Shown one piece after another: positions 3,035-48,302 of a stretch of 64,000 nt of DNA. The stretch's first letter is position 1, and every line of letters begins with the position of its first letter. The DNA lies in the NCBI GenBank assembly GCA_965240325.2, contig OZ251237.1, positions 1,116,001 to 1,180,000 on the forward strand, read 5' to 3'. The position numbers and the translations under genes were made by a program. The notes below the pieces were generated by a model, which was not told the origin of the DNA, ran no database searches, and saw only the letters and a list, made by a program, of their open reading frames with translations. The DNA comes from Rebecca billardiae RCC1528 (lineage: Eukaryota > Protista > Haptophyta).

Positions 3035-6000
3035 TCACGAATCGTTGCTGGCCAGCTGTCGTGCGGGCACGCGTGGTGGCTGGCTCGGCGCGGGCGCGGC
3101 GTTGCAGCCGGCCTCCTGCCGCGAGTCACGCGTGCGCAGCCGCACGGGCATCGTGCTCTGCAGCTCGTCGATGGACTCCCACCGTTGGATTGACGGCTGC
3201 CGCCTCACCTGCACCTCGGGCGGCAGCACGCAGCGCTGATGGCCCACGTACCCGGAGGTGGCGGTGCTCACGCGCGCGGCCGCTGCGGCGACCACGCCCG
3301 GCAGCGGCGGGAGGCGGAAGCCGGCGGACGGCCGCTGCGCGCGAGGGAGCTGCGAGAGCTGCGGCGCCGACGGCAGCGGCAGCTGCGGCCGCGGCGCCGT
3401 CATCTCGGGCGGCAGCGGCGCGACCGGCTCAGGCGACGTGCCCGCCGCCGAGGGCATCATGTCACAGCTGGTGTTGCCGCCCGTCATATCCAGCCAGCTC
3501 ATGCGCGGCCGGCGCACCGACGGGCCGCCGCGGTGGACCGCTCCGGCCGAGCCCGGCGGCACCGCGAGCGCAGGCGAGCCGCTGGCCTCCTCGGCCCTCG
3601 CGGCGTCCGAGCCCGGCAGCGGCAGCCTGCGCGGCGAGGCGTTCGTCGGCGTCCAGTTGGTCGAGCCGATGCACGCGCCGAACACGCCGCTGCCGAACAC
3701 GCCGCTGCCGCGCAGGCTGGCGCTCCCGCGGCTACTGCTGGGCCCGCCGCGCCCTCGCTCGTAAGCGTCGCGCTCGGCCGTCTGCCGCTCGGCGGTGGCG
3801 CGGTTGAACGTGCTGCCGCGCCGCGTGGGGAAGCGAGGGACAAAGCCGGGCGTCATGCCATCCGAGTTGCGTCGGGAGCCCAGCCGCGAGTTTGAGTTGC
3901 GGGCCTCCGAGCCCCCCGAGCGCTCGTCGTCGCTCGGCACGAGCTGGCCGCCGCTCCCCATCAGCCTGGCCAGTGTGAGCAGGCTGCCGCCCGGAGGCGT
4001 GCCGCCCTGCCCGCGGCTCCCGCCGCTCGCGCTGTTTGTGCTGCCGCGGAGCTCGCGCCTGCGCGCGCGCGCGCTCGGCGTAGGCGTGCTGCTGCCGCGC
4101 GAGCGCCGCCCCTCGCCGTCGTCAGACGAGACCGACGCCGCCGACGATCGGCCGACCACCGTGCCGCCCATGCCGGTGATGCGCGCGACGCGCGCGCCGA
4201 TCTGCTGCGGCGCGTTGGCGAGCATCGTCGAGAAGCGCGGGCGTCGGCTCGGCGTCGGCGCGGCAGACGAGCGCGCAGAGCGCCCGCCGCCCTCGTTCGC
4301 CACCGTGTGCGAGAAGGACCAGCGCTGCGCGCGCGTGATCGAGTCCGCCTTGCCCGAGAAGTCGTCCGAGGGGCGCGCGCGCAGCAGCATGAGCGTGTGC
4401 AGGGTGGCCATACCCGGCACCAGCGACAGCAGCAGCGCGGGCACTGTGACCAGCAGCACGATCGCGCCGTCGCCGAGCAGGCGATACGCCAGCAGCAGCT
4501 CGAGCAAAGCGCCGCGCACGCCGCCCGCGAGCCGCGCGCCGAGTGTGGGCACCTTCTGCTCGCGCCGCTCGCGCCGCCTGCGCTCCTTCTCCGCGAGCTC
4601 GAGGGCGACCGCGCGCGCGCTCCGCAGCAGCTGCACCGGGCGCGGCGTGAGCCCGCGCCACGAGTTGAGCACCGAAGGGGCGGTGCTGCCGCTGCGCGCG
4701 CTGCTCGCCTCCGACGGCTCAGACTGGTACGCCGGGCAGCGCGACAGCTGCAGCGTCGGGCAGCTCGGCCGCCGCGCGCCGAGGGGCGGCAGGGCGGTGG
4801 CGCACACCGCGGCCGGGGCGCTCGGGCCATCCGCCGGCGCGGCCGCGGCGGCCGGCGCGGGCGCGGCGGGCGCGGGCGCGGGCGCGGCCGGCGCGATGGG
4901 CGGGGCAACTCGCTTGCTCACGCGGGCGGGCGTGGCCCCGGGAGGCAGCGCGAGCAGCAGGCTCCCTGCGTTGGGCGGCGAGGGCGAGCGCCCGGCGGCA
5001 CCACCGGGCGGCGAGGTCGTGCGGGCAGTCGCCGCGGGGGGCGAAGCAGCGCGGCCGTTGGCGGCCGGACCGCCGGCACCGCCACCGCCGCCGTCGCCGT
5101 CGGCGCCGCCGGGCGGGACGCAGGCGCCGCCGATGGCGAGCCTGATGAAGCGCGGCGGCGTGGGCGCGCGGGACGGCGTGCGCGCGCCCGGCGGCGTGCC
5201 CAGCGCGGGCGTCGGCGGGTGCGCGACGGCCGTCGGGCCGGTGGCCGCGGCCGCGCTCGCCGCCGCGAGCAGCGACGGAGGGGGCGCGGGAGAAGCACCG
5301 AGAGGCGGCGTGCTGATTGAGGGCGGGGTGGAGGGCGCCGACGAGACGACGGACTCCGCCGCGTCCGCCGGCGCGGGCGCGCCCGCCGTCGACACCGCGC
5401 CCAGCCCGAGGGCCTCCGCGGCCCTCGCCAGCCGCGCCGTCCTCCCCGGCCTGGCCTTGACCGTGTGCGCGGCCGCGCGGCCGAGGCCGGGTAGCAGCGA
5501 GCTGAGCGCCGAGCTGCACGCGTGCACGCCCAGATACTTGGCGGTGCCGACGACGGCGAGCTGCGCGAGCGAGAGCGGCTCGGGGCGGGGCGGCGGGCAC
5601 GCGCCCGACCGCTGCCGCGCCTCGAGCGCCTGCACCACCGAGCCGTACAGCGCGTGCGCCCACAGCTCCGCCGCGTGCGCGCCGCCGATCGCGAGCGCGA
5701 CGACGACGAGCCCGAGCGCGCGCGCCGCCGGCTTGGCCGCGGCGGGCGCGCACGCGGCGGCGCCGAGCGCGAGCACGGCGACGGGCGCGCCGAGCAGCAG
5801 CTGCAGCGCGGGCGTGACGACGCCGACGAACTCGAGCGCCACCCACGCGCCGGCGCGCGGCGCGGCGGGCGGCGCGAGCAGCGAGAGGGCGAGGCCGCCG
5901 AAAGCGCACGCGCCGAGCGCGCGCCGGCAAGACGCAACGAGCCGGAGCGCCGAGCGCGCGCCGAGCGCGCTCAGCTCGGCGCGGTGCCAGTGGCGCCAGC

Positions 6001-8237
6001 CGTCGCCCCCGTCGGCGAGGAGCCAGCGCGCGGCGCCCAAGAGGTCATCGCGCACGATCGAGCGCGGCGCGAGGTGCCTCGGGTTGAACACCGACGGCGT
6101 GAGCAGGAAGCTGCCGATCGCCAGCCCGGTCGAGCCCCAGAACACCGGACCGGGTCCGGCGCTCGGCCGCATGAGCAGGCAGAGCGTGAGCATGGCGAGC
6201 ATGTCGGCGGCGGGGCGCATCGTGAGCTGCGCGAACGCGCGGTACAGCGTGGGCAGCGGCTGCCGCGCCACCGCCATCGAGCGCCCCGTCGGGATGTACG
6301 CCGCGCCGCCCGTCGAGATCTCGCCGCGGAATGACTGGCCGGTCACCTGGTTCTGGAAGCCGTAGAAGAGGAGCGAGCACGAGAGCAGCTGCCCGAGCAG
6401 CTGGCCGAGCGCGCGCACGGGGCCGTGCGCGAGCGAGAGCTGCAGCAGCAGCGGCAGCGTCTGCACCGCGAGGAACATCAGCGCGAGCGTGCCGAACTGG
6501 CTGTCGAGCACCGCCGCGACGATCGGCGCGTACTCGCCCCGCCCGGCCGCGCCGGCCGCGCCGGCCGACTCGACGGCGGGCGGCACGTCGCTCGCGCAGA
6601 AGAAGACGAAGAGGAAGATGTACGCCCACAGCATGTACTCGAGCGCGAGCGGCGTGACGTAGTGGCCGACGTGGCCGTAGAAGAAGCCGAGCAGGCGCAG
6701 GAACGGCAGCCGCGTGCCCAGCCGGTAGCTCTGCCGTGTGAGCGTCACCTGCGCCGCGCCGCGCGCGAGCTTGGCGATGAACATGAGATGCGAGACGAAC
6801 GTCATCTCGCGCCCCTTGCCCACCTGCATGTACTCGCGGTGCACGACGGCGCCGCCGCGGAGCATCAGGTCCATCCCGGCGAACACGTCCTCGCTCAGGT
6901 TGAGCCCCTTGGTCGCCTTGGAGACGCCGCCCTGCGCCATCATCGTCATCTTCTCCATGATGTCGGGGTGGCCGTAGTACTGGCGCGAGAGGAGCGGCTT
7001 GTCCATCGTGCGCTGCGTGATCGTGCCGAAGACGAGCTCGGCGGAGCCGGCGAAGTGCGCCACCGCGCCGCCCACGCTCGAGTAGATGTGCTCGCGGAAG
7101 CCGACGATCGCGACGCGCCACGGCGCCGTGCCGCCGCCGCCCGCCGCGACGCCGCCGCCCGCCGGCTGCGCGGCAGAGAACTCTGCGAGCGCGTTGCAGA
7201 TCTTGAGCGCCTCCTCGAGGTAGCCCTCCTGGTTCGAGTCGATCGTCTGGATGAACCGGCCGCGCGCGAAGATCAGCGCGTGGTTCTGGTTGTCCCCCTT
7301 CCCGTCCCCGAGGATCGGGTGGCCGGGCAGCTCGACGCGGTGCCGGGGCTCGCGCCGGCCGTCGGCGCGCAGAGGGCAAGTGCCGTCGACCACACACGAG
7401 AAGAAGCGCCTGCCGTGCGCGGCGCTCTCGTCGGCGACGGTCTCGATGTACGCGATCTTGAGCATCCGCGGGAACTCGTCGAGCAGGATCTCCGACGCCT
7501 CGCGCTCCTCCGGCGTGAAGTCGGCGTACCGCTGCATCGAGACGACGCACGAGAACTTGGCCGCGACCAGCTCCTCAATCTCGGCGGGCGCGAGATCGGG
7601 CCGCTGCACGCAGAGCAGCAGCTCGAGGGCCTTGGCGTAGGCCATCATGCCGCGCACGGTGCGGTACAGCGTCTGCGAGCGCATCGCCGCCCACTTGCGC
7701 AGCGGGATCAGCAGCGCGCTCAGCCCGCGCCCGTCGTCCTCCTCCTCGTCGTCCGAGCCTCCGAGCAGCGGCGGCTCGGGCAGCGACCAGAGATCGGAGT
7801 CGGCGGACGAGCCGGAGCGGTCCGAGTCCCACCGCGCGCGCTCGCCCTCCTCCTCCGAGGCGGAGCCGGCGGAGTCGAGGTCGGTGTCGTCCACCGCCGT
7901 CGCGCCCGGGATGCCCGAGCCCCGACGCCCCTCGCCCCCCGGCGCGCCGCTCGGCGCGCCGCTGCCGCGCCGCCGGCCGATCCGTATCGAGCCGTGTTGG
8001 CTCGCCATTGTGCGCACGGAGCGCAGGCGGCGGCGAGCGAGCTCGGCGAACGAGGCGACGCGCTTGGCGGTGGCGCGGTCGCCGCCGCGCGCGAGGCGCT
8101 CGGTCACGATCGACCACATCAGCCGCCACTGGTGCTCGCCCACGCGGCCGCGCATGTGGTTCAGCTCGAGCGGGAAGTACGACATCAGCATCGCGATCAG
8201 CGGCCCCGTGTGCTTGCCGCCGCGTCCGCCGCCCGGC

Positions 8238-8275
<38 letters not shown>

Positions 8276-11200
8276 CGGTGGCTCGAGCAGCTCTTTCTCC
8301 GAGGTGATGATGGTCTCGCCGTAGTGCGGGATGAGGACGGAGAACGAGGGGAGCGCCTCGACGGGCGCCGGCCGCGGCATGTGCATGCGCAGCGACTGGC
8401 GCAGAAACCGGATCCTCCGGCGCGCCTCCTTTGAGCGCGGCAGCACGGCCGACTCGCGCGCGGCCGCGTCTGCAAAGATGCGTGGGCGCACCAGGTTGGC
8501 CTGCGCGTGCTGCACGCCGGCGTACGAGAGCGCGCGGCGCTCGGAGACGGAGATGATGTCGTTCTCGTGCATGTCCGTGCAGATCGCGTTCCACACGAGC
8601 GCCCACTGCCGCTCCACGCCGTGCGGCAGCGGCACCGCCGGGCCCGAGCGGCCGAACGGCCACGCGCGCGGCGCCGACGCCGCGCCGCCGGTCAGCCGCT
8701 CGCTGCTGCCGCCCGCCGCCGCGGCGGGGTCGGCCCCGAAGCGCGCGTCGCGGAGCTCGGCGGAGTCGCTCGCAAAGATCTGCTCGACGAACGCGGCGGG
8801 GATGTCGCACAGCCGCTTCACCGACGGCGCGTCCTCCTGCGCCTCGTCCTCGTCCTCGCCCGCGCCCGCGCCGCCGCGGCCGCCGCCGACCGCGCCGACC
8901 GCGGCGCTCGCCGTGCGCGCCGCCGCCTTGTGCAACGGCGCGTACGCGGCGTCGTCGGCCTTCGCCTTGAGCCGCGCGAGGCCGTCGACGGTCTGGCTGT
9001 GCCCGCCCGCCTGCGTCTTCCCCGCGAGCAGCAGCAGCCCGCGCCCCGTCCCGTAGATCGCCACGCCGAGCACGTACCAGTAGTACGTGGAGGTGAAGTG
9101 CGCGCCGAGCGTGCAGCCCCAGACGAGGGCGCCGTGGCAGAGGCGCAGCGCGAGCGCTGGCGACGAGCGGAGGTGCCACGCCGTCTCGGGCGTCTCGAGG
9201 AGCGGCCAGAGCGGGTGGATCGCGTCGAGCCGCGCCGACGCCACCGCGCCCGCGTGGATGCTCACCAGCGTCTCCGCGCCCAGCTTCACGCCGAGCACGA
9301 CCGCCCAGAAGGCCAGCATCTGGCGCGCGGTGCTCCGGCCCGCGCGCCGCACGTGCGTGTCAAAATGCGGCATCTTGCGCACCAGGTGGCGCACGCCGAC
9401 GACGGCGCGCGCGCCGACGAGCGCGGAGAGCGCGAGGTACAGCCAGCGCAGGCTCGCGTCCTGCGGCCGCACCACCGCCAGCGCGAACAGCCCGAGCTGC
9501 AGCAGCAGCGGCGCCGACTTCTCCGGCTCGGCGAACGTTCCGAGAAACGTCGCGTGCGGCTTGACGCCGATCTTGGCGAGGTCGCCGCCGAGCTGGACGA
9601 GGGCGGGGAGGAGGAGCGAGGCCTGCAGCGCGAGCTCGGTGTTGGGCCCGCGCGCGCCCACCGTCGCCACGCCCCACTCGCCCGGCAGCGCGTGCAGCGC
9701 GAACAGCGCCGCCGCGAACGTCGCGGCGTGCAGCGCGGCGATGCGTGCGTATGACGTGAAGACGCCGTACCAGGCGAGCCGCTCATAGTGGCGCTTGCAC
9801 CCGGCCATCGAGGCGTGCCAGTCGACGCTGGCGAGCGCGGTCCAGCGCTCGCGCATCGGCAGGTCGAGGATGTGCACGCCGTCCTTCGTCACCACGCGCC
9901 CGATCCGGCCGGGCGTCCAGAACACCTCGTTCCAGTCGTCGTAGTTCTCGCGCGTGCCCGCCTTGCCCGCCGCCTTGGAGCCAGGCTGCTCCTCGGGCCG
10001 GCCGCGCGCGTCGAGGCCCCTGAACGAGCGCGAGAAGATGAACTCGTACAGCGGCCGGACGTAGAGGCGCAGGTACGCGCCCGGCTCGGCGAGCGGCAGC
10101 TTGCCAGGGCCGCCGCCGCTCGACCCGTCGGCGGCGGCGGCGGCTCCGCCGCCGTCGAGGCGCGCCTGCGGCGTGTTTGCGCTCCCGCCGCCGCAGCTGC
10201 CGCCCGTGTGCGAGCGCGGCCCGACGCCGCCGCTCCCGCCGCCGCAGCTGCCGCCCGTGTGCGAGCGCGGCCCGACGCCGCTGTCGTCGTCGACGCCCAC
10301 CCAGTTGAAGCGGTCGCGGTGCTCGGAGGCGGGCGCGGGCTTGTCCGCGGCGTGGTTGCGCGCGCACTCGAAGAAGAAGCACAGCGCCTCCGGGCAGAAG
10401 CGCACGTTGCCCGCCTCGCCCCACAGGCAGAGGTAGAGCGCCATCTCGTGCACGCGCTGCGCGTGCGACGGCTTGCCGTGCATCATGGTGTCCGAGCGGC
10501 CGCGCAGCCGCTCGAAGGAGAGCAGCCCGGAGGCGACCTCGAGCCAGCGCGAGAACGAGGCGAACATGATGCCGTGCAGCTCCGCCGCCGCGGTGATCTC
10601 GTCGCCGCACGCCGCCGTCTGCGCCGCCCAGAGCTGCACGAGGTGAGCGTACTGGGCCTTGACGGACGCGGCCTGGAATCCAAATACGCGCGCGTAGTGC
10701 GCGAACAGCCGCTGGAGCTGCCGCACCGACGCGTCGGAGAGGCGCGTGCGCGGACGGCAGAGGAGGCAGCCGGGGTAGTTGGCCGGCGTGCGCGGCGGCG
10801 CGCCGTCCGCGCGCTCGGTGCCGCCGCGCTGCGCGCCACCGGCCGCGGCGCCGCCGCCGCGCTCGCCGCCCGCGCCTCCGCCCTCGCCGCCCTCGCCGCC
10901 GAGGCATCTTCCGTCGTGCAGCGTGAGCGAGATCGCGGGCGCGACCATCGCGACGGACGATCGTCGGGCCGTCGGCAAGATGGAGAAGCGCCTCCGGCTG
11001 AAACTCGAGCGCCGACGCCCGACGCTCTGCCGTCGAGGCTTCGGCGGCGGCGCGGGCGCGAGCGCTCGGCGCACGGCGCTCCGCGCTCTCCTCCACAGGG
11101 CCGGCACGCAGCAGCCGAGCGCGCACACCGCCACGCCCAAGCCGAGCGCCAGCGCCGACCACGGCGGCGGGCCGATCGCGCGGCAGTGCAGCGCGCCGTC

Positions 11201-13339
11201 GAGCAGCAGGTGGCAGCACTGCTGCCCGCCGCTCACCTCCTCCGCCCACGCGCGCAGCACGTGGTTGGCCCGCTGGCGCGCGGAGCACTGGTGGAACGCT
11301 CCGCCGCTGAGCACGCTCGCGCACGCCGCCTCGGCCGCGGTGCCGTTGGCGCGCGCGCACAGCTGCTCGCGCACGCTCTCCACCTCGTCGATGGAGTGCC
11401 TCGCGAGGACGACGCACCGCCGCTCGTGCGGACTGGTCCACAGCGCCATGGCCCACGCGCCCGACGCGCCGCCCACCACGCCCCCCTCGCTAGCCTCCGC
11501 GTCGGCGGCGGCGGTGGCCTCGTCGGCCTCTGTGTCGTTGGCCGCAACAGCGTCGGCGCCGAGCCGCATCGCGCCGGCCGAGAGCGCGCGGCAGTCGCGC
11601 GCGGCGCCGACGTCGCGCGCGGCGCAGCGCGGGCCGGTCCACCCGTCGTCGCACACGCACCGCGCGCGCCGCGGCCCGTCGCCGTCCGGCCCGAGCGAGC
11701 CGCCGACGCAGCGGCCGTGCGCTCTGCAGTCGCCCGCACCGCCGCCGCACGGCGCGCCGCCCGGCCGGACGGGCCGCAGCGGCTCGCCAGTGTCGCCCGG
11801 CGGCACGTACCGCTCGCGGTGCTTGCGGATGAAGTCGGTCGTCGGCCGCTCGGGCGGGTCGCACCCGACGTTCTTCGCGCCCTCGCGCTGGTACACGCGC
11901 ACGTGCTCCACCTCGTACTTGGTGGGCAGCATCGCGCACAGGTCGGCGAGCCACTGCCGGCTGTTGACGAGCGCGCCCGTGTCCTCGTCCAGCTCCATGC
12001 ACTCGGTGCACGCCGTGCGCGTGCAGTCGCTGCAGCAGTCGCAGCGCGTCTCGTCGCACCACGGCCAGCCCCACTTGGTCGAGAGGTCCACGTTGAGGAT
12101 CAGGTACATCGGCTCGTCCGGGATCTTGCGCCCGTCCATCGTGCCCTCGCCCTCGCCGTCGCGGAAGGAGATCGGGCGCTCGCGGGTGACGACGCTCGCG
12201 GGCACGGTGTACCGCGGCTCGTCGTCGACGGAGAAGCGCACGCGGCCGTCGTCGCCGCCGGTCCACTCGCACTGGTACGTGTGCTGCCCCTCGAAGTGCG
12301 CCTCGCCGATGCTGTGCATCGCCGAGAACGCGTCCGTGTGCAGCGTCTGCCCCTGGGGTGCGTAGACGTCGCCGAAGAATTCGTAGTTGAGCGAGATGTT
12401 CTGGCCGTGCGCGTAGATGGGGCCGTACGCCTCGGCGGTGGGCCAGAGCTCGGGGTAGTACGAGTACTCGCGGCCGTACTCGTTGGGCATGCACCCGTCG
12501 ATCGGCCGCTCCACCGCGTCGAACGGCTGGCCCGGCGCCGCCTGCAGCGACGTGGCGAGCATCGGCAGCGGCACGCGCGTGCGCTCGATCCAGCTCGGGT
12601 CGACGGGCGGGCACAACCCCGACTCGACCTTGTCGCCAAAGTCGTAGACGAACGTGCCGGGCATCGCCTCGACGATGTCTAGTTCGGGCGCGCCGCGCGC
12701 CTGCTGCCCGTCGCACCCGTCGATCTCCCACGTGCCCGCCTGGTTCGCGCGCCTGTGCTCGCGCGCCGGGCAGCTGTCCGTGTTGAAGGGCCACATCCGA
12801 TCGGTGCTGCGCGGGAACGTTGCGCGGGCGAGCTCGCCGACCATCCAGAACGCGGGCCAGAGGCCGGGCTGCGTCGAGCGGCCTGGGAGCTGGGCTGACA
12901 GCTCGACGAAGCCCTCCGTGAAGCAGAACTTGGACCAGCTCTGGATCATCGCAGACTCGTACGGCCGCTCGGCGCCGTCCTGGGCCTGCGCGAGCACATC
13001 GGCCACCGTCGTCTCGATGACGAGCTTGCCGCGCTCGGTGTACACGTGGGACGCGTCGTACGTGTTCACCTGCAGGTTCGTCTTGGGCTCCGACTCGATC
13101 GCCGTCCAGATCGGGTCGTGACCGTCGTCAAACGTCCGCCCGTCCTGCTCAAACTCGTCCGAGAAGACGAGCTCGTACCGCACGCCGTCCACGAGCTTGA
13201 AGCGCGCGCGCTCCGGCGTATCGGGGTCGACCCAGTCGGCATGGTCCGTCGCAGACGGCGCCGGCTGAAGCGCGAGCAGCAGCGCCGCCAGCGCCAGCCG
13301 CTGCCATCTTTGGCGCGGTGGTCGCGACAACGTCTCCAT
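3035..13339 (-). CDS. Fusion: signal peptide + GH16 KRE6/SKN1-like domain + EGF-like domain + TM + FKS1-type 1,3-beta-glucan synthase (GT48), ~3434 aa
   Basis: One uninterrupted ORF. ATG 13339 precedes a hydrophobic signal (LALAALLLALQPAPS). GH16: LVFSDEF, YESAMIQSWSKFCFTEG, GLWPAFW, RGAPELDIVE. EGF-like: C..HGRC...CVCDDGWTGPRC. FKS1 domain 1: LYLCLWGEAGNVRFCPEALCFFF, NYDDWNEVFW. GT48: GDGKGDNQNHA, TIDSNQEGYLEEALK, GFREHI, YGHPD, GGVSKATKGLNLSEDVFAG, QVGKGRE. Confidence 0.93.
10181..10281. repeat. 51-bp exact in-frame tandem duplication inside the glucan synthase CDS
   Basis: gctcccgccgccgcagctgccgcccgtgtgcgagcgcggcccgacgccgc occurs at 10181 and 10232, encoding GVGPRSHTGGSCGGGS twice. Confidence 0.9.
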
Positions 13340-13682: not shown

Positions 13683-16546
13683 TCAGATGAGTCCACTGCT
13701 CTCCCAGATCTTCCACAATCTTCTGGTGAGGGTGTCGATGTGCGAGTTGATCGTGTGGCGGGATTGGTCGAGCCCCGTCAGCAGCTCAGTGTGCGCCTGC
13801 ATCAACGAATCCACCTTGCTGCTCGCACGCGCGTGCGGACCGGGCGCCCCGTCCGACACCCGCGATGAGAACCGCGCGCGCGCGCGCGCGCCGCTGCCCA
13901 CGTGCTGCGCGGGCTGGTGCGCGCGCGCGCGCGCACCGGGAGAGGTTGGTGTAGATGCGCTTGCGCCGCTCCATCTCGTTCTCGATGCGCGTCTGCTCGT
14001 CCGTGTCCTTGAAGTCGCGCTCGAGCACGGACTTGCGCTCCTCCGCCTCCGCCTCCATGTCAGCCTGCAGCGACGTCAGCTCCTCCTTCGTCAGCCACCC
14101 CTTGGCGCCCGTGTCGTACCGCTTGAGCACGAGGTCCGCGTTCGACCAGTACCGCCACGTCGGGAAGCGGTCGGACGGCTGCGCCAGGCCGGACGCGCGG
14201 AGGATCTCGCGGAGCTCGCTCTCGGTCACGATGCCGTCGGACAGCGCCTGCGTGATCTCGCGCTGCGTCTTGCGCGTGCGCAGCGCGATGATGAGGAACT
14301 TGTACTGCTTCTGCGCGAGCTGCACGATGATGCCGACCGTGTACTTGATCGTGTTGTACAGCTTCCGGCTCTGCGGGTCCTCCTTGAGCTCCTTCTTCGC
14401 CTGCGCGGGCGCGGCGTGCAGGGGCGCGCGCGTCGGGGCGGCGGGTGCGAGCCCCACGCGGGAGCGCGTCGGCGGGCGCGGCGCGCGCATCGCGCAGCGC
14501 GACCGCGGCGCGCGCACGCACGTGTGCGTATGACGAGGTGACGATGGCGACGAACATGTTGAGCAGCACGAACATGACGAAGATGGCGTACATGACGAAG
14601 AGCACCGGGCCGAGCAGCCGGTTCGCCTCGCGCAGCTCGTCCAGGTTCACGTCGCCCGAGAGCACGGCGAAGAGCGTGTAGAACGACTCGCCGCCCGTCG
14701 CAAACTCGAGCAGGTCGGTGCCGAACGAGAGCTGGAACGCCTGCATGAAGCCGAGGAAGACGATGGTGAACATGACGAGGAAGCCGACCAGGTCGGCGAA
14801 CGCGTGCGAGACCGTGCGGTTCAGCATCGAGAGCTGCGGCACCACCGTCGCAAACTTGAACATCGAGATGAACGAGAGGAGCACGTTGATTGACAGAATG
14901 TTCTGCGTCTCGTACATCGAGTCTGCGACCTTGTGGAAGTCGACGAACTGGTTGGCGCGCGGCGCGAGCGTGAGCGAGGTCAGCGTGCGCAGCGCGCTCA
15001 TCCGGCGCACCGTCACCACGATGTGCAGCCCGAGCGACGCGTACTGGATCACCGAGAACAGGTCCATGTGCGTGATGCCGTGCTCGAGCGCCAGCCAGAG
15101 CACGTACACCTTGCCCGCCGCGGTGTCGTCCGAGTCCATCTTGCGCGCGTCGCGCAGCACGCGCCGCGCCGTGCGCCAGTGCTTGCGCGTCTCCCACGCC
15201 ACCGTGCGCACGATGAGCACGAGGAAGAGCAGCTCGGCGACCAGCTTGAGGATGTCGAGCCGGTTGGGCGGCGGGAACGCGTCGGCGCGCGCCGTCAGGA
15301 ACATCAGGTGGCGCACGGGCGAGACGGTGTAGAAGGTGGCGACGCCGTACACGCCGCCGGTGAAGGGCATGGTCATGTCGATCGTGACGGAGCAGTACAG
15401 GTTGGACGGCGCGTTGTACGTCGTGAACAGCAGCTCGAGCACGCGCGTCTGCTGGTCGACGTACAGGTGGTCCTGCAGCTCGTCGATAAAGTCCTGCCAC
15501 TGCGAGAGCACGAGATCGGACGGGATGTCCATCTTGTGCAGCTTCTCCTCGGGCGTGAAGGTCTCGCCGCCCGTGCCCTCGCTCACGTCGCGCCGCCCGC
15601 CGCCGCCGCCGCCGCCGCCCGCGCGCAGCTGCCGCCGCCAGTCCGGCGCGTCCCCCTCCTCGCCGCCGCCCACGCGGATCGCGCCCGCGTCGGTGCGCGC
15701 GTCCTCGCCAAAGAGCCGACGGCCGATCATCGCGGGCCGCCGGCGCACGCGCGACTGGTCGATGAGCGCGGGGTCGATGCGGTAGTAGTTGCGCGGCACG
15801 CCGAACGGCTCGCCGCTCCACGACTCCGGGTCCGCGCTCGGCCGCGGGTAGCACGACTTGATGGTCGGCTGCGTGCCGCGCTCTCGGTAGACCGGCAGCT
15901 CAGCGCAGTTCTCCCACGTCGAGTTGATGCGCGCGGTCACGAGGCGGATCGCGCCGATCTTGCGGTGCGCGCGGTCCATGATGAACGGGCGGTCCTCCTT
16001 CGGCGTGCCGTCCTCGGAGAAGAGCTCCTCGCTCAGGATGTCCCGCAGGTACTCCCACATCTCGTTCACGTCCGCGATGCCCTCGTTCAGGTAGAACACC
16101 TCGCTCGGCCGGTCGTGCTTGTCAAACATGTGCGGCGGGTCGGCGAGCAGCGCCTCGCGCATGCGGTCGACGAGCGGGAACGCGTCCGGCAGCCCGTTCA
16201 TGTTCGTCGCGACCACGATCAGCACGATCAGGAAGAGCAAGTACTCGAAGAACTCGGCGAGGAACGTGAGCGTCGAGCGCAGGTCCTCGCGCGACGCCTT
16301 GGCGCGCACCTCGGTGCGCAGGGCGCCTACGGTGCTCAGCACGAGGCCGATGCGGCTGATGCGCCGGGCCGGCTTCGCCTCCTCCTCCTCCTCGTCCACA
16401 TCCAGCAGCTGAGCGCTCGAGAGCGCCTCCCTCGAGAGCCCGCTCTGGAGGATCGCCCGCTGGATGCCAGACTCGGCGGCGGTCGGCTCGCGCGCCCCGG
16501 CCGACATGCCGCTCACGCTCAGCGCCTTGCCGCTCTTCGACGACAT
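13683..16546 (-). CDS. Polycystin-2 (PKD2/TRPP)-like cation channel
   Basis: Exons 16546-14522, 14400-13937, 13818-13683 (GT-AG introns). S1 is followed by a large TOP-like loop (YVDQQTRVLELLFTTYNAPSNLY) and an S5-pore-S6 region (FGTDLLEF...ANRLLGPVLFVMYAIFVMFVLLNMFVAIV). The C-terminus has an EF-hand-like loop YDTGAKGWLTKEEL and a coiled coil. Confidence 0.88.
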
Positions 16547-16895
16547 GGCTCACGACGGGCACCCGCAGCCCCGCGGGCTGGCGCGATGCAACAGGGCCCG
16601 GCCCCGCCCGCCCGCCGGTGCTGGCTGGTCCTTGTTGGCGCCGGCGCGCCGCTGCTGGTCACCTGCCTCCACCCCCAAGAAGTCATGCGGGAGTCCGGGC
16701 CACTTGCAAGCGCGGCGCCTCCGACGCGGGCGCCATCGTGATCAAAGATGACCGCGCAACTTGGACGAAAGCGTTCGTCGTGCAAGTTTCTGGGGCTTTC
16801 CACGGGCGGACAAGGAATAATTGCGCGCAGCTTGCGTGCACGTGGACGGAGCTTCGCAACCGGCCCGGGCGGACCCCCCGTCGCTTGACGACGCG

Positions 16896-28067: not shown

Positions 28068-30969
28068 TCACTGTTTTGACCGCGAGTGCTCCCACGTCGC
28101 CGGCTGGCTGTGCTCATGCTCGTGCTCAGACTCGGTGCCGACTGCGCCGATTGAAGCGTCCGTCGCGTGCGGTTCGGGCTGCTCGTGCGCCTCATCCACC
28201 GCCACTGATGCCGAGGCCAGCACCCGGTCGGGCGTGTGGTAGCCGTCGTACGGCTTCCACGGCACCGCGTTGCTATACGCGCGCAGGTAGTCGCCCCACC
28301 ACGGCAGCCCCATGGCAAAGTGCACGCTGTACGCCGCCTTGTGCAGCGGGTGGTCCACCTGCCGCGTGGCGCTCTCCGGCAGCGCCGCCGCGTCCAGTAG
28401 CCGCTCGATCGCCGCCTGCACGCGCGGCGGCGCGAGCACGCGCGCGCGCGCGCGGCCGTGAGCGCGGCACGCACGGCGCGCGCGCGCGCGCGCGCGACAC
28501 GGCGGCAGCGCGCGCGCGCGCACCTCCCACGACAGCGTGTAGCGCTCGACCGCGCTGAGCGGCTGCGGCGTCGACTCGAGCGCGTCTCGGACCTGCTTGG
28601 CGAACTGGGCGGGGGTCCTGAAGAAGCGCGCGTTGGCGAAGGACTTGAAGAAGTTGTTCGACGGGTGCTCGGCGATCACGACCACCTTGCCCATCGCCAG
28701 CGCCTCCGCCGTCGCCGTGCACAGCACCTCGGACGTGCTCGGGTTCACGAACACGTCGTACGCGTTGATCGACTCGTCCGCGTGGTCGATCGCGCCGAGG
28801 AAGTCGGTCGGCGAGCCGCGCGCGGCGGCCTCGGCGCGGATGTCCTCGTCGTCCGGGCCGTAGCCGTAGCAGTCGACGCGCACGCCCCCGAGCTGCGCGC
28901 GCCACGCCTCCGAGTCCGTGAGCTCGAGCAGCTGCCGGTACCCCTTGGCCCACAGCGCCTTGCCCAGAAAGTAGATCCCGTCGGACGCGCGCGCGGGCGG
29001 CGGCTCGACGGCGCGGCGCGCGCCGATGGCGAGGAAGTCGGGGCGCACGCCGTGCACGTTGCGCACGATGCAGCGGCCGGGGAGCCACTGCAGCGTGTCC
29101 GACAGCTTGATCGTCACGTCGCAGTACGCGGCGACGCACAGCGTGTTGATGAACCACGAGCCGGCCATCGTGCTCGCGCCAAACTGCTCCGCATACGCGA
29201 TGTAGTTTGTGTGCGCGACGCCGACGACGTGGCGGAAGTGGCGGTTCCACCGCGTGCCGTGGTGGTTCCACGTGAGGTGCTCGGGCTCCTCGAGGATCGC
29301 CACGTCGTCGCACCCCGCGGGCAGCTGGCGCACCAGGTCGGTCGTGGGCATGATCGAGCCCGCCACCTCGTCAAAGCCGGCCGGGTACCACGCAATCTCG
29401 AAGTCGAGATTCGGCAGCGAGCCCTTCGTCTCGCCCCACCAGCGGATGTACTCCTCCTGCTCGGCGGGGCTCTGGAAGCGCAGCGAGGCGGGGAAGACGT
29501 AGTGCTGCTCGTCCGGCGCGAGCCACGGCACCACCAGCGTCACCTGCCGCCTGCCGCTGCGCTCCGCGAGGTAAGCTGCGCGCAGCAGCGGGTTGATGGA
29601 CGTTCCTGTCATCCACGGCAGCGCCGCCGTCGTCACGATCGTGATGTGCCGCCCGTCGGTGCGCAGGTTGGAGGCGTCCGAGACGCGGAACGGCCCGAGC
29701 AGCTCGACGTCCGCCGCCGCGTCCACCGGCGGCGGCGGCAGCACGTCGGGCGGCAGCGCGGGCAGCGAGACGGCCGCGCGCCAGCGCGCGCGCAGCTCGG
29801 CGAGCGTCGGCCGCGCGCGCGCGCCGCCCTTCTGTCCCGCGCGCTGGAAGACGCGCTCGATGAACTCGCGCAGCTCAGAGTAGCTCGTGGCGCCGGTCTC
29901 CGGCCCGTCCGACGTGAGCTCGCCCGTCGCCACCGACTCCTGCCACTCGCGCTTCAGCGTGAGGTACGCGCTCTCGATCTCGCGCTCGATCTCCTGCACG
30001 TCAGATTTGATCTCGGCGGTCGCGTTGGTCATGCGCTCGCGCCGCTTGTCAAGCTCCTCCTTCGCGGCGGCGATGCGCGTGCGCAGCTTGGCCTGCGCGT
30101 CCTTGGAGGCGACGACGAAGACCTTCCGGATCTCCGTCGCGTTCGGCGCCGAGCCGTCCTCGCGCGAGCGCGTGAGCACCTCCTTCACCGTCTCGTGGTA
30201 CTCAGCCGGCAGCGAGTCCGTCAGCACTTCCTCCAGCCCGCGCCAGCCCTCGCGCTGCAGCACGCGCAGCGCGGCCTGCACCTGCAGGCGCTGCCTCGCG
30301 CGCAGCTCGGCGGAGGGCGAGGCGCGGCCGGCGCGCGCCGGCTGGCCCACGCGCCGCCCGCCAAGCGCCCTGCCGCCGCCGCCGCCGCCGCCGACGCCGG
30401 CGCGGCGGCTGCGGACGATGCCGCCGCCGCCGCTCGCGGCGCGCCGGCGAGCCGTGATTGGGGGCAGGTCTTTCAGCCGGCCCTCGACGTCCAGCTCCAC
30501 CTCCTCCTGGAAGCGCTCCCAGTCGCTCTCGAGCGTGCGGATCGCCACGCTCGTGCGCTGCACGAGCTCGCGCCCCACCACGCGCTGCTCGGGGCTCTCG
30601 GGCCAATCAGCAAGCGTCTCCTCGAGCAGCGTTGCCATGCGGTCAAGCATGGAGGGCGGCGCGAGCCAGGCCGGCTGCTGGCGCGGGTCGGCCAGGCTCC
30701 GACGTCTGCGAGGGAGCGGTCGCACGCGCGGCGGGCGCCGCGACGCGAGGGCGTGTCACCGGCGTCGCGCGGCGCCGATCTGGGCGGGCAAAACGAGCGC
30801 GCGGCGCCGCGCACCTCTCGTTCCGATTTTGGGTGACCTTCATGCGCACGAGAGGGACGCGAGCCCTGTGCGCGCGACTCGGCGTCAGTGAGACGCTGCG
30901 GTGGGCATGGGTACCCACCGCGAGCAGTAGCAGCGCGAGCGCGCCGCATGCCGCGCGCTCGCCGGGCAT
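28068..30969 (-). CDS. DGD1: Digalactosyldiacylglycerol synthase (GT4)
   Basis: Exons 30969-30815 (signal peptide), 30705-28524, 28415-28068. Motifs: IVTTAALPWMTGTSINPLLRAAYL, AILEEPEHLTWNHHG, HTNY, NVHGV, YFLGKALWAKGY, FVNPSTSEVLCTATAEALAMGK. Confidence 0.93.
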
Positions 30970-46547: not shown

Positions 46548-48107
46548 TCACCACGTCCACGAGCCGGGCCCGCCCTGCGCAGGCACAAAGACAGCTGGCG
46601 TGATGTCGCTCACGCAGCGCCAGTTGTCCGGCTGCCCGGCGTGCATGTCCGTCCCTGCGGACACGGAGTGGCCCGGCTCGAGGCACGCGTATGCGCTGCC
46701 CAGCCCGCCCGAGGCCGAGGGCACGGCGATGACCGGCCGCGCGCGCACGACGCCCTGCTTGTCGTCCGCGCGGTGCCACCACGCGCACGAGCACGCGGAG
46801 TCGAGCGCAGCATCGACCGCGAGCTGCACGTCGTCGTGCACGATCGCCTCGCCGAAGCCGCGCAGCTCGACGGCGACGCCAAACACGGGCGCGCCGTACC
46901 GCCGCTGCACGGTGCGCCGGCGGTCGGGCCGCTGGTCGGCCTCGCGCGCGCTCAGCGTCACCGACTGCACGCCGCCGACGAGCACGCTGCGCTCTGGGTC
47001 GACGAGCAGCTGCGCGAGCGAGTCCCCGTGCACCGACGCGATCACGTTGACGCCGCGGCCGGTGATCGTGCGCGCGGCGGTGCACTCGTCCTTGTTCGAC
47101 AGCTCGTCCACGATGATGAAGTCCGGCGACATGTTCTCCACCGCCTCGATCATCGCGCGGTGCTGCCCGAGCTTCGGGTCGACGGAGAGCACGCGCGCGT
47201 TGCCAATCGCCTCGTGCGGGACGATCGCCGGGCCGGCGATCTCGAGGCTCTTGTCCACGACCACGACGACGCGCTCGTCGCCGAGCGAGAGCAGCCGCGC
47301 CAGCTCGCGCAGCACCGTCGTCTTGCCCACGTTCGGCGGGCCGATCAGCACGAGGCCGTGCGCGCAGAGCCGCGCTGCGGCGCGGCCAGCTTCGACCTCG
47401 CTGGCCGGCAAAGCGGGACGGGCCGAGGGCTCCTCCGCGATGCTGGCCGCATTGAGCGCTGCCGACGCGGGGCGGACGAGCAGCGGCAGCGCGTGGCCCT
47501 GCATCGTGCGGCCCACGCGCGCCGCGATCGCCACCACCTGGTCTTGAACGGCGTGCATCGAGCGCGAGATGCGGTGCAGAGTGCCGTCGATGCCCGAGCG
47601 GCGCGCGCTCGGATCGAGCGAGCGGAAGAGCGGCAGGAACGCCTCGAGCTGCTCCTGGCTCACCAGCTCGTTCGAGCGCAGGATCGTCGTCGAGCCGCCG
47701 TGCGCGTTCGCGAAGACGAGCTCGCACCGCCGGCCCGTCGCGAGGTACATCTCTTTGATCACGCGGCCCTTCTCCTCCTCGCGCTCTGCCGCGAGGCGCA
47801 GCGAGTCGCGCATCGGGCCGCTCGGGATCACCGAGTACAGGCGTTCCAGGTCGGCGGCGTTCGCCGCGCGCTGCTCATCGACTGGCCGTGCGCTCGGGTC
47901 TTGCGCGGGCCACTGAATGACCTCGCGCCACTCGATCGCCATGAAGAACGGGCCCTGGTTCGGCGTCACCTGCTGCTTGTTGCCGTTGCTCGGCGCGACG
48001 CGTTCGCCGCGCGTGCCGCCGCCACGCCCGCGCCCGCGCCCGCCCCGGATGAGCGGGATCGCAGTCCGCGAACCATTCGAGGTTGCCGGTGACGGGGGCT
48101 GTGACAT
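46548..48107 (-). CDS. Ycf45/SpoIIIAA-like AAA+ ATPase
   Basis: RSGIDGTLHRIS, ARVGR, Walker A GPPNVGKTT, MIEAVENMSPDFIIVDE (Walker B), LVGGVQSVTL. Confidence 0.85.
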   Translation of the reverse strand: MSQPPSPATSNGSRTAIPLIRGGRGRGRGGGTRGERVAPSNGNKQQVTPNQGPFFMAIEWREVIQWPAQDPSARPVDEQRAANAADLERLYSVIPSGPMRDSLRLAAEREEEKGRVIKEMYLATGRRCELVFANAHGGSTTILRSNELVSQEQLEAFLPLFRSLDPSARRSGIDGTLHRISRSMHAVQDQVVAIAARVGRTMQGHALPLLVRPASAALNAASIAEEPSARPALPASEVEAGRAAARLCAHGLVLIGPPNVGKTTVLRELARLLSLGDERVVVVVDKSLEIAGPAIVPHEAIGNARVLSVDPKLGQHRAMIEAVENMSPDFIIVDELSNKDECTAARTITGRGVNVIASVHGDSLAQLLVDPERSVLVGGVQSVTLSAREADQRPDRRRTVQRRYGAPVFGVAVELRGFGEAIVHDDVQLAVDAALDSACSCAWWHRADDKQGVVRARPVIAVPSASGGLGSAYACLEPGHSVSAGTDMHAGQPDNWRCVSDITPAVFVPAQGGPGSWTW

Positions 48108-48302
48108 GGCTGTCTTGGTACTCTCCGGCGAAACCTGCGCTCTCGGCTAGGCGGCTGAGCCGTCCTCCCTCGTGCAAGAGCGTGAGCGGCGCCGAGAGAG
48201 GGCAGACCTTCCGGTGGATTCGCGCCCCGCACACAAGTGAAGTCCGGCCGGGCTGGCCCGCTCCGCTGGACCGCTCCGAAGTGGACGTGACCAGGGGCCA
48301 CG

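Follow-up and report, generated by a model that had tools for sequence, protein, structure and literature searches.

A haptophyte gene encoding a KRE6-type GH16 domain fused to an FKS-type GT48 synthase, and its possible role in coupled glucan synthesis and remodelling

The way in which enzymes of the Kre6 type work together with glucan synthases is not settled, nor is the route by which beta-1,6-rich glucans arise. In Saccharomyces cerevisiae, the glycosyltransferase family 48 (GT48) synthase Fks1, whose GT domain is cytosolic in the solved structure (PMC10499315), and Kre6/Skn1 are separate proteins, and Kre6 is of type II with a cytosolic N-terminus (PMC10543733). In Schizosaccharomyces pombe, the glycoside hydrolase family 16 (GH16) protein Ghs2 and the synthase Bgs3 work as a complex (PMC13612389), which physically couples a GT48 beta-1,3-glucan synthase with a GH16 remodeller for the making of branched glucan. 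However, two proteins and a non-covalent association are involved there, and the product is fungal cell-wall glucan. The papers found on algal glucan synthesis describe TGS and GT48 solely as separate proteins (including PMC10543733, PMC2173943), and the stand-alone TGS of Phaeodactylum (TGS1/TGS2) and Pleurochrysis (PhTGS) have a signal peptide, an SKN1/KRE6 domain, one transmembrane (TM) helix and a cytosolic tail (PMC10543733; PMC2173943). Here we analyse a window of 64,000 nucleotides from the haptophyte Rebecca billardiae RCC1528 (assembly GCA_965240325.2, contig OZ251237.1, positions 1,116,001 to 1,180,000, taken as one whole stretch), in which a single gene on the minus strand (3035-13339) encodes both a KRE6/SKN1-type GH16 domain and an FKS-type GT48 synthase. 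Its N-terminal layout is that of the algal TGS, but in the window protein the cytosolic tail runs on into a full GT48, and the fusion is in effect a TGS tail extended into a GT48 N-terminus. The GH16 half is predicted to be of type I, in contrast to yeast Kre6, and its link to the synthase is covalent, in contrast to that of the Ghs2-Bgs3 complex.

Fusions of this kind have been recorded before in oomycetes. According to the Discussion of PMC13612389 (2026), beta-1,3-glucan synthase is fused to GH16 in certain oomycetes, and the architecture is restricted to that group. The source given there, Morris 2009, contains no mention of glucan in the main text and supplements examined, and the oomycete record consists of this one Discussion paragraph together with database entries. 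Our literature search found no paper on an algal GH16-GT48 fusion. The window gene is a new algal instance of an architecture already recorded in oomycetes, and the stated restriction to that group is contradicted by it and by the relatives described below; the finding thus corrects the 2026 statement.

The minus-strand frame between 3035 and 13456 is open across 3,473 codons without a stop. Its first ATG lies at 13339 and the stop codon at 3035-3037, which gives a coding sequence (3035-13339, minus strand) of 3,434 codons plus stop. The probability of finding no stop in a frame of 3,473 codons is about 2e-21 at the local base composition, and the longest open reading frame (ORF) in 200 shuffles was 816 codons. 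Because the gene region is 72-80% GC (68.4% for the whole window, a value between those of published haptophyte genomes, and about 50% for local non-coding DNA) and antisense frames over it run to 975 codons, a stop-free frame is weak evidence by itself. GC content at third codon positions (GC3), however, is 0.85-1.00 for each 60-codon bin across the 3,434 codons, with inserts and tail included. It is 0.90-0.98 at the GH16/GT48 junction, 0.90-0.92 within the basic linker and 0.90-0.95 along the C-terminal tail until the stop, beyond which it falls to 0.47. In the same frame just upstream of 13339 and downstream of 3035, which served as a flank control, GC3 is 0.42-0.57 with 1-5 stops per 60 codons. 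Since local non-coding DNA has a GC content of only about 50%, an intron in the fusion gene would be visible. The gene is therefore a single exon; it is nuclear and starts with the ATG at 13339. We considered the low-complexity inserts as read-through introns and rejected them as such, since coding-type GC3 is maintained through them. The long antisense and off-frame ORFs that overlap the gene (up to 964 aa, including 9788-12682 and 3795-6365 on the plus strand) are shadows of the extreme GC3 and not genes.

Comparison with relatives leads to the same picture. Residues 14-1006 of the window protein align with residues 2-982 of P0001, an ORF marked complete in an MMETSP transcript, in one unbroken BLASTP segment, and residues 35-1445 align likewise with residues 24-1319 of P0002, whose ORF occupies all of a transcript-like contig of 7,452 nt. 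These single-segment alignments indicate that the GH16-GT48 junction is homologous without a break to transcript-derived fusions. The initial annotation of this stretch had described one stop-free frame with signal peptide, GH16, Cys-rich stalk, one TM helix, FKS1 domain 1, TM block, GT48 core and further TM helices in this order. Pfam matches, GC3 and BLASTP colinearity agree with that description, and its claim of a single polypeptide is borne out by the continuous GC3, the stop-rich flanks and the colinearity with relatives. We are thus highly confident that GH16 and GT48 are encoded here by one real fused gene.

A protein search for this architecture, as the initial annotation had proposed, recovered it in protist transcript, metagenome and oomycete proteins. 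With the GH16 part as a region-restricted query against clusters of proteins of similar total length, PF03935 and PF02364 were found together in ten protein clusters. Eight of these come from MMETSP (P0001), JGI (P0002, P0004), Logan (P0006) and ENA metagenomes (P0003, P0005, P0007, P0010), and the remaining two are the oomycetes Pythium oligandrum and P. insidiosum; Aphanomyces stellatus provides a third oomycete fusion. P0003 is intron-free on a 19-kb eukaryotic contig. The caveat that such fusions might already be on record was justified, both by the oomycete case of PMC13612389 and by the protist transcriptomes and metagenomes. Among the 150 best representatives from an exhaustive search for GH16, GT48 or FKS sequence is present in only six, so that fusions are a minority of the family. 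No second fusion copy is present elsewhere within the window. A scan of metagenome contigs with the junction as query returned only one locus (L003; contig OWNL01000096.1, 76-8145, plus strand), an unrelated single-ORF protein of 2,689 aa with FN3 and teneurin-like EGF modules, and the match was to the EGF-like module alone.

The N-terminal half starts with a signal peptide (aa 1-29; 13253-13339, minus strand, as are all features of the gene given below) which consists of a basic n-region and a Leu/Ala core and is followed by the conserved WVDPDTP opening of GH16. The close relatives all start with a signal-peptide-like hydrophobic N-terminus and have a single TM helix. The KRE6/SKN1-type GH16 domain (aa 30-515; 11795-13252) matches SKN1_KRE6_Sbg1 (PF03935) at 9.5e-62 with 209.5 bits against a cut-off of 30, which places it in the Pfam family of Kre6. 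In a PDB sequence search, the GH16 part matches bacterial laminarinases of family GH16 (1e-5). We modelled aa 30-730 with AlphaFold2 from an alignment of 47 sequences, with a predicted local distance difference test (pLDDT) value of 87.4 and a predicted template modelling (pTM) score of 0.89. The top Foldseek matches of this model are GH16 laminarinases (E about 1e-17, target-normalised TM-score 0.7-0.78), and its top match in the ESM Atlas is a diatom SKN1/KRE6 cluster (TM-score 0.66/0.75 over 500 residues). The catalytic motif ELDIVE (ExDxxE; E219, D221, E224) is located at 12668-12685, exactly where it had been annotated, and these three columns are invariant or nearly so in the 47-sequence alignment. 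The domain is followed by a Cys-rich stalk (aa 516-725; 11165-11794), common to the window protein and its relatives. It has an EGF-like module (aa 536-573), to which Pfam gives a weak EGF_Teneurin match, and the secondary structure of the model shows a disordered stretch as well as a small helical module. One row of the ESM Atlas search was a bacterial cluster (commonest phylum Armatimonadota) which joins a GT2 glycosyltransferase and GH16 in one protein, perhaps as a prokaryotic counterpart to the coupling of a synthase with GH16.

A single TM helix (aa 726-748; 11096-11164, hydropathy 2.29), annotated earlier at about 11105-11175, is the only helix that separates GH16 from the GT48 half. 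It is followed by a basic cytosolic linker, delimited by alignment and rich in Arg, Ser and Gly (aa 749-869; 10733-11095). Linker length among relatives ranges from about 30 to about 170 residues, and in some of them only about 30-45 residues lie between the helix and the FKS domain. The ectodomain ahead of the helix has 29 Cys and three NxS/T sequons, whereas the 20 residues past it contain six K/R and no D/E, consistent with the positive-inside rule. The predicted layout of the GH16 part is thus that of a type I protein, with a signal peptide, a lumenal domain, one TM helix and a cytosolic continuation. Because of the signal peptide, the Cys residues and sequons, the positive charges after the helix and the homology to cytosolic FKS sequence downstream, GH16 is predicted to face the non-cytosolic side, where the glucan chain emerges. 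The earlier proposal that GH16 sits on the side of chain exit is supported as a prediction by the signal peptide, the charge pattern and the FKS homology. The linker also contains several RRxS-type motifs (RRQS, RRRSS, RRRFS, RRSS) that are not conserved among relatives and could be candidate phosphorylation sites for basophilic kinases.

The GT48 half is a complete synthase of the FKS/callose-synthase type. Residues 870-1208 align to the N-terminal cytosolic region of GSC2/FKS1 (residues 178-482), and the corresponding FKS N-terminal cytosolic domain (9743-10732) includes FKS1_dom1 (PF14288; 4.4e-15, 56.4 bits against a cut-off of 27). The first TM block (aa 1200-1560; 8660-9742) has about six to seven hydrophobic segments and is colinear with P0001 and P0002. 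The catalytic domain (aa 1580-2230; 6650-8602), defined by Pfam and by alignment to FKS1, matches Glucan_synthase (PF02364) at 6.7e-163 with 544.3 bits, where the cut-off is 37.2, and a PDB sequence search returned yeast FKS1/GSC2 at 1.5e-134. It contains the motifs PHYGE (8315-8329), GDGK..NQNH (7280-7309), TIDSNQ (7229-7246), LSEDVF (6881-6898) and VGKGRE (6806-6823). The SED which had been annotated as intact at about 6876-6896 lies inside LSEDVF, and motif alignments and conservation support the view that the catalytic motifs of both GH16 and GT48 are intact. The active site of Fks1 has been described as consisting of E851, D1080, K1082, D1102, N1104, E1155, K1172, E1173, H1195, E1221, D1222, K1246 and R1248 (PMC10499315), and 11 of these 13 residues are identical in the window protein in a HMMER alignment to FKS1. 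The position of K1172 is occupied by Ala in the window protein and by S, A or Q in every fused protein examined; we considered this substitution as a sign of inactivation and rejected it, since no fused relative carries Lys there. Fks1 N1220, a mutated residue that is not among the 13, is Ser in the window protein. The second TM block (aa 2231-2618; 5486-6649), found by hydropathy, aligns with FKS1 up to residue 1584 and with P0001 and P0002. The GT domain is thus flanked by hydrophobic blocks at about aa 1200-1440 and 2231-2612, with a further one at 2959-2977, colinear with FKS1 and the relatives. The last conserved TM region (aa 2946-3034; 4238-4504, hydropathy 2.34) aligns by BLASTP with residues 2356-2439 of P0001 and 2306-2353 of P0002.

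The window protein differs from yeast Fks1 and from its own relatives by large low-complexity additions. Compared with P0001, extra low-complexity segments are present at aa 1006-1089, 1435-1507, 1806-1876 and 2618-2948, in addition to a tail of 400 aa. One of them is an Ala/Pro/Gly-rich insert of about 330 aa (aa 2619-2947; 4499-5485) between conserved C-terminal TM helices, which is in frame and has coding-type GC3. The C-terminal tail (aa 3035-3434; 3038-4237) is rich in Ser, Arg, Gly and Pro and likewise has coding GC3; neither it nor the insert has a homolog in the relatives. Two repeats were noted. The segment at aa 1006-1089, a Gly-rich insert of the FKS N-terminal domain, contains a perfect in-frame tandem duplication of 51 bp (17 codons; 10180-10281, minus strand). 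It codes for two copies of GVGPRSHTGGSCGGGS and has the appearance of a very recent in-frame expansion. In the GT48 domain, just past PHYGE, a (GCC)20 run (8216-8275, minus strand) is read as GGC codons and gives a poly-Gly stretch which the relatives do not have.

The three oomycete fusions (P. oligandrum Poli38472_000629, P. insidiosum PINS_up000163 and A. stellatus As57867_009479) resemble the window protein in their order of signal peptide, KRE6-type GH16 with ExDxxE, membrane passage, FKS1_dom1 and GT48, and their GT48 catalytic motifs are conserved. However, about five TM helices in a block come right after their GH16, and they lack a Cys-rich stalk, whereas in the window protein a stalk (about 210 aa) and a single helix follow GH16. 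In the GH16 tree, the window protein falls in a clade of 16 rows (Shimodaira-Hasegawa-like approximate likelihood-ratio test, SH-aLRT, 99) with seven other fused proteins and eight stand-alone proteins, of which five finish with one TM helix and a short tail and one comes from the dinoflagellate Polarella glacialis. The oomycete fusions form a clade of their own in this tree, but an approximately unbiased (AU) test does not reject the joining of oomycete and algal fusions (p 0.10). The algal fusions are a single clade (99/99) in the GT48 tree, while those of oomycetes fall together with callose synthases of plants and with a Saprolegnia enzyme that is not fused (99/97). Here the AU test rejects a joint oomycete-algal clade at p 0.0018, a value to be read with the facts that this group was defined once the tree had been seen and that the tree is thinly sampled, word-index searches having given few unfused GT48 sequences. 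The GT48 tree and its AU test, together with the different linkers, suggest that the algal fusion likely arose independently of the oomycete fusion, though this is not proven. A third group of fusions, from ENA metagenomes, consists of P0005 (4,377 aa) and P0007 (3,784 aa); it has a very long GT48 branch (2.53) and much longer spacers, and may represent a separate lineage or a separate fusion event.

The arrangement of the two halves suggests how the protein might work. The GT48 part would polymerise beta-1,3-glucan from cytosolic UDP-glucose and thread the growing chain through its TM channel. The signal peptide and the type I TM helix would hold GH16 and its stalk in the lumen or outside the cell, with the flexible basic linker connecting the junction helix to the cytosolic N-terminal domain of the synthase. 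The tethered GH16 would then meet the chain on the far side and transglycosylate it, most likely introducing beta-1,6 links or branches, and the result would be a branched beta-1,3/1,6 glucan of the type usual in these algae. We infer from sequence both enzyme activities, the membrane site (vacuole or plasma membrane), the product and the expression of this copy. Coupled synthesis and remodelling is the best-supported reading, with the Ghs2-Bgs3 complex and the dependence of haptophyte beta-glucan on PhTGS as precedents. For the latter, RNA interference of PhTGS is reported to reduce haptophyte beta-glucan (PMC10543733). We consider it probable that one fused membrane protein carries out such coupled synthesis and remodelling, and for the specific synthesise-and-branch mechanism we lean slightly towards acceptance.

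Several observations weigh against this reading. A look-up of the exact 3,434-aa product found no identical entry on record, and sequencing-run searches with 3.4 kb (RNA runs) and 1.4 kb (runs of any kind) of sequence listed no run. GH16 enzymes can be plain hydrolases, and the structural neighbours of our domain are laminarinases. The roughly 950 aa of low-complexity inserts and tail that the relatives do not have could disturb folding or be removed. Finally, hydropathy alone does not fix the number of helices in the first TM block, and the topology argument for this reason rests on homology to the solved Fks1.

The destination of the product is the point on which an alternative survives best. 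The protein might act at the plasma membrane and make a surface or extracellular beta-glucan (wall, scale or cyst) instead of a vacuolar storage glucan. The signal peptide, which lacks a plastid-type signal, is compatible with either destination, the stalk, Cys-rich and EGF-like, is of a kind typical for extracellular proteins, and the GT48 enzymes of oomycetes and fungi make plasma-membrane glucan of this sort. However, it has been stated that a cell wall of beta-glucan is not described for haptophytes, and TGS has been linked there to storage glucan (PMC10543733). We therefore regard a surface product as rather unlikely, but as an alternative to be taken seriously. Towards the opposite end, it is conceivable that the algal single-chain GH16-GT48 is a dedicated maker of beta-1,6-rich storage glucan in haptophyte-like algae, in which the beta-1,3 chain of GT48 would be converted to beta-1,6 by the Kre6-type half as it emerges. 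The ratio of beta-1,3 to beta-1,6 linkages in haptophyte glucan is about 2:3, and it has been noted that beta-1,6-glucan has no known multi-pass membrane protein that carries a catalytic domain (PMC10543733). We put this stronger proposal forward only as a speculation, on the doubtful side. If it were true, covalent coupling would have arisen at least twice, in algae and in oomycetes, in parallel to the non-covalent Ghs2-Bgs3 association.

It is also possible that the fusion is real and GH16 is a hydrolase, which would trim, release, set the length of or recycle the nascent beta-1,3 chain without making beta-1,6 branches. The nearest solved structures, by Foldseek and by PDB sequence matches, are indeed endo-beta-1,3-glucanases, and ExDxxE is found in GH16 hydrolases as well as in transglycosylases. 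However, Pfam places the domain in the SKN1/KRE6 family and its top structural match is a TGS-type cluster from diatoms; members of the SKN1/KRE6 family have been linked to the synthesis of beta-1,6 branches in diatoms and one haptophyte (PMC10543733). A purely hydrolytic GH16 thus appears unlikely to us. Still less probable is that the one ORF gives two working proteins, through an internal transcription start or proteolysis in the variable linker. The linker is disordered, basic and poorly conserved, and stand-alone type I TGS-like proteins occur within the same GH16 clade. Against this stand the full-length fused ORFs in transcript assemblies of the relatives, the short helix-to-FKS distance in some of them and the continuity of coding-type GC3. 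That the long frame is an artefact, in which stop-poor GC-rich DNA has merged two adjacent genes or read-through introns, could appeal to the composition of the region and its long antisense frames but is effectively refuted, as barely credible, by the stop-rich non-coding DNA around the gene, the unbroken coding signal, the continuous matches of the junction to fused transcript-derived proteins and the minute chance of such a frame.

A natural covalent fusion is Rosetta-stone evidence that both activities cooperate at one membrane site, and it offers one construct to express, mutate and assay. Together with the fungal and oomycete cases, it points to convergent coupling of synthase and remodeller across fungi, oomycetes and algae. 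Marine algae hold a large pool of carbon as storage beta-glucan, and an enzyme that shapes such glucan is therefore of ecological interest.

Three other loci of the window were noted, all on the minus strand. The upstream neighbour on the same strand as the fusion gene (14063-16549), which ends near 14063, encodes a polycystin-type cation channel (PKD_channel 1.3e-31, Polycystin_dom). An ORF of 895 aa at 28071-30755 has a GT4-type glycosyltransferase domain (Glyco_trans_1_4) and is a further carbohydrate enzyme nearby. The third, an ORF at 46551-48146, has a match (1.5e-13) to Spore_III_AA, a family of bacterial ATPases, here in a eukaryotic nuclear setting.

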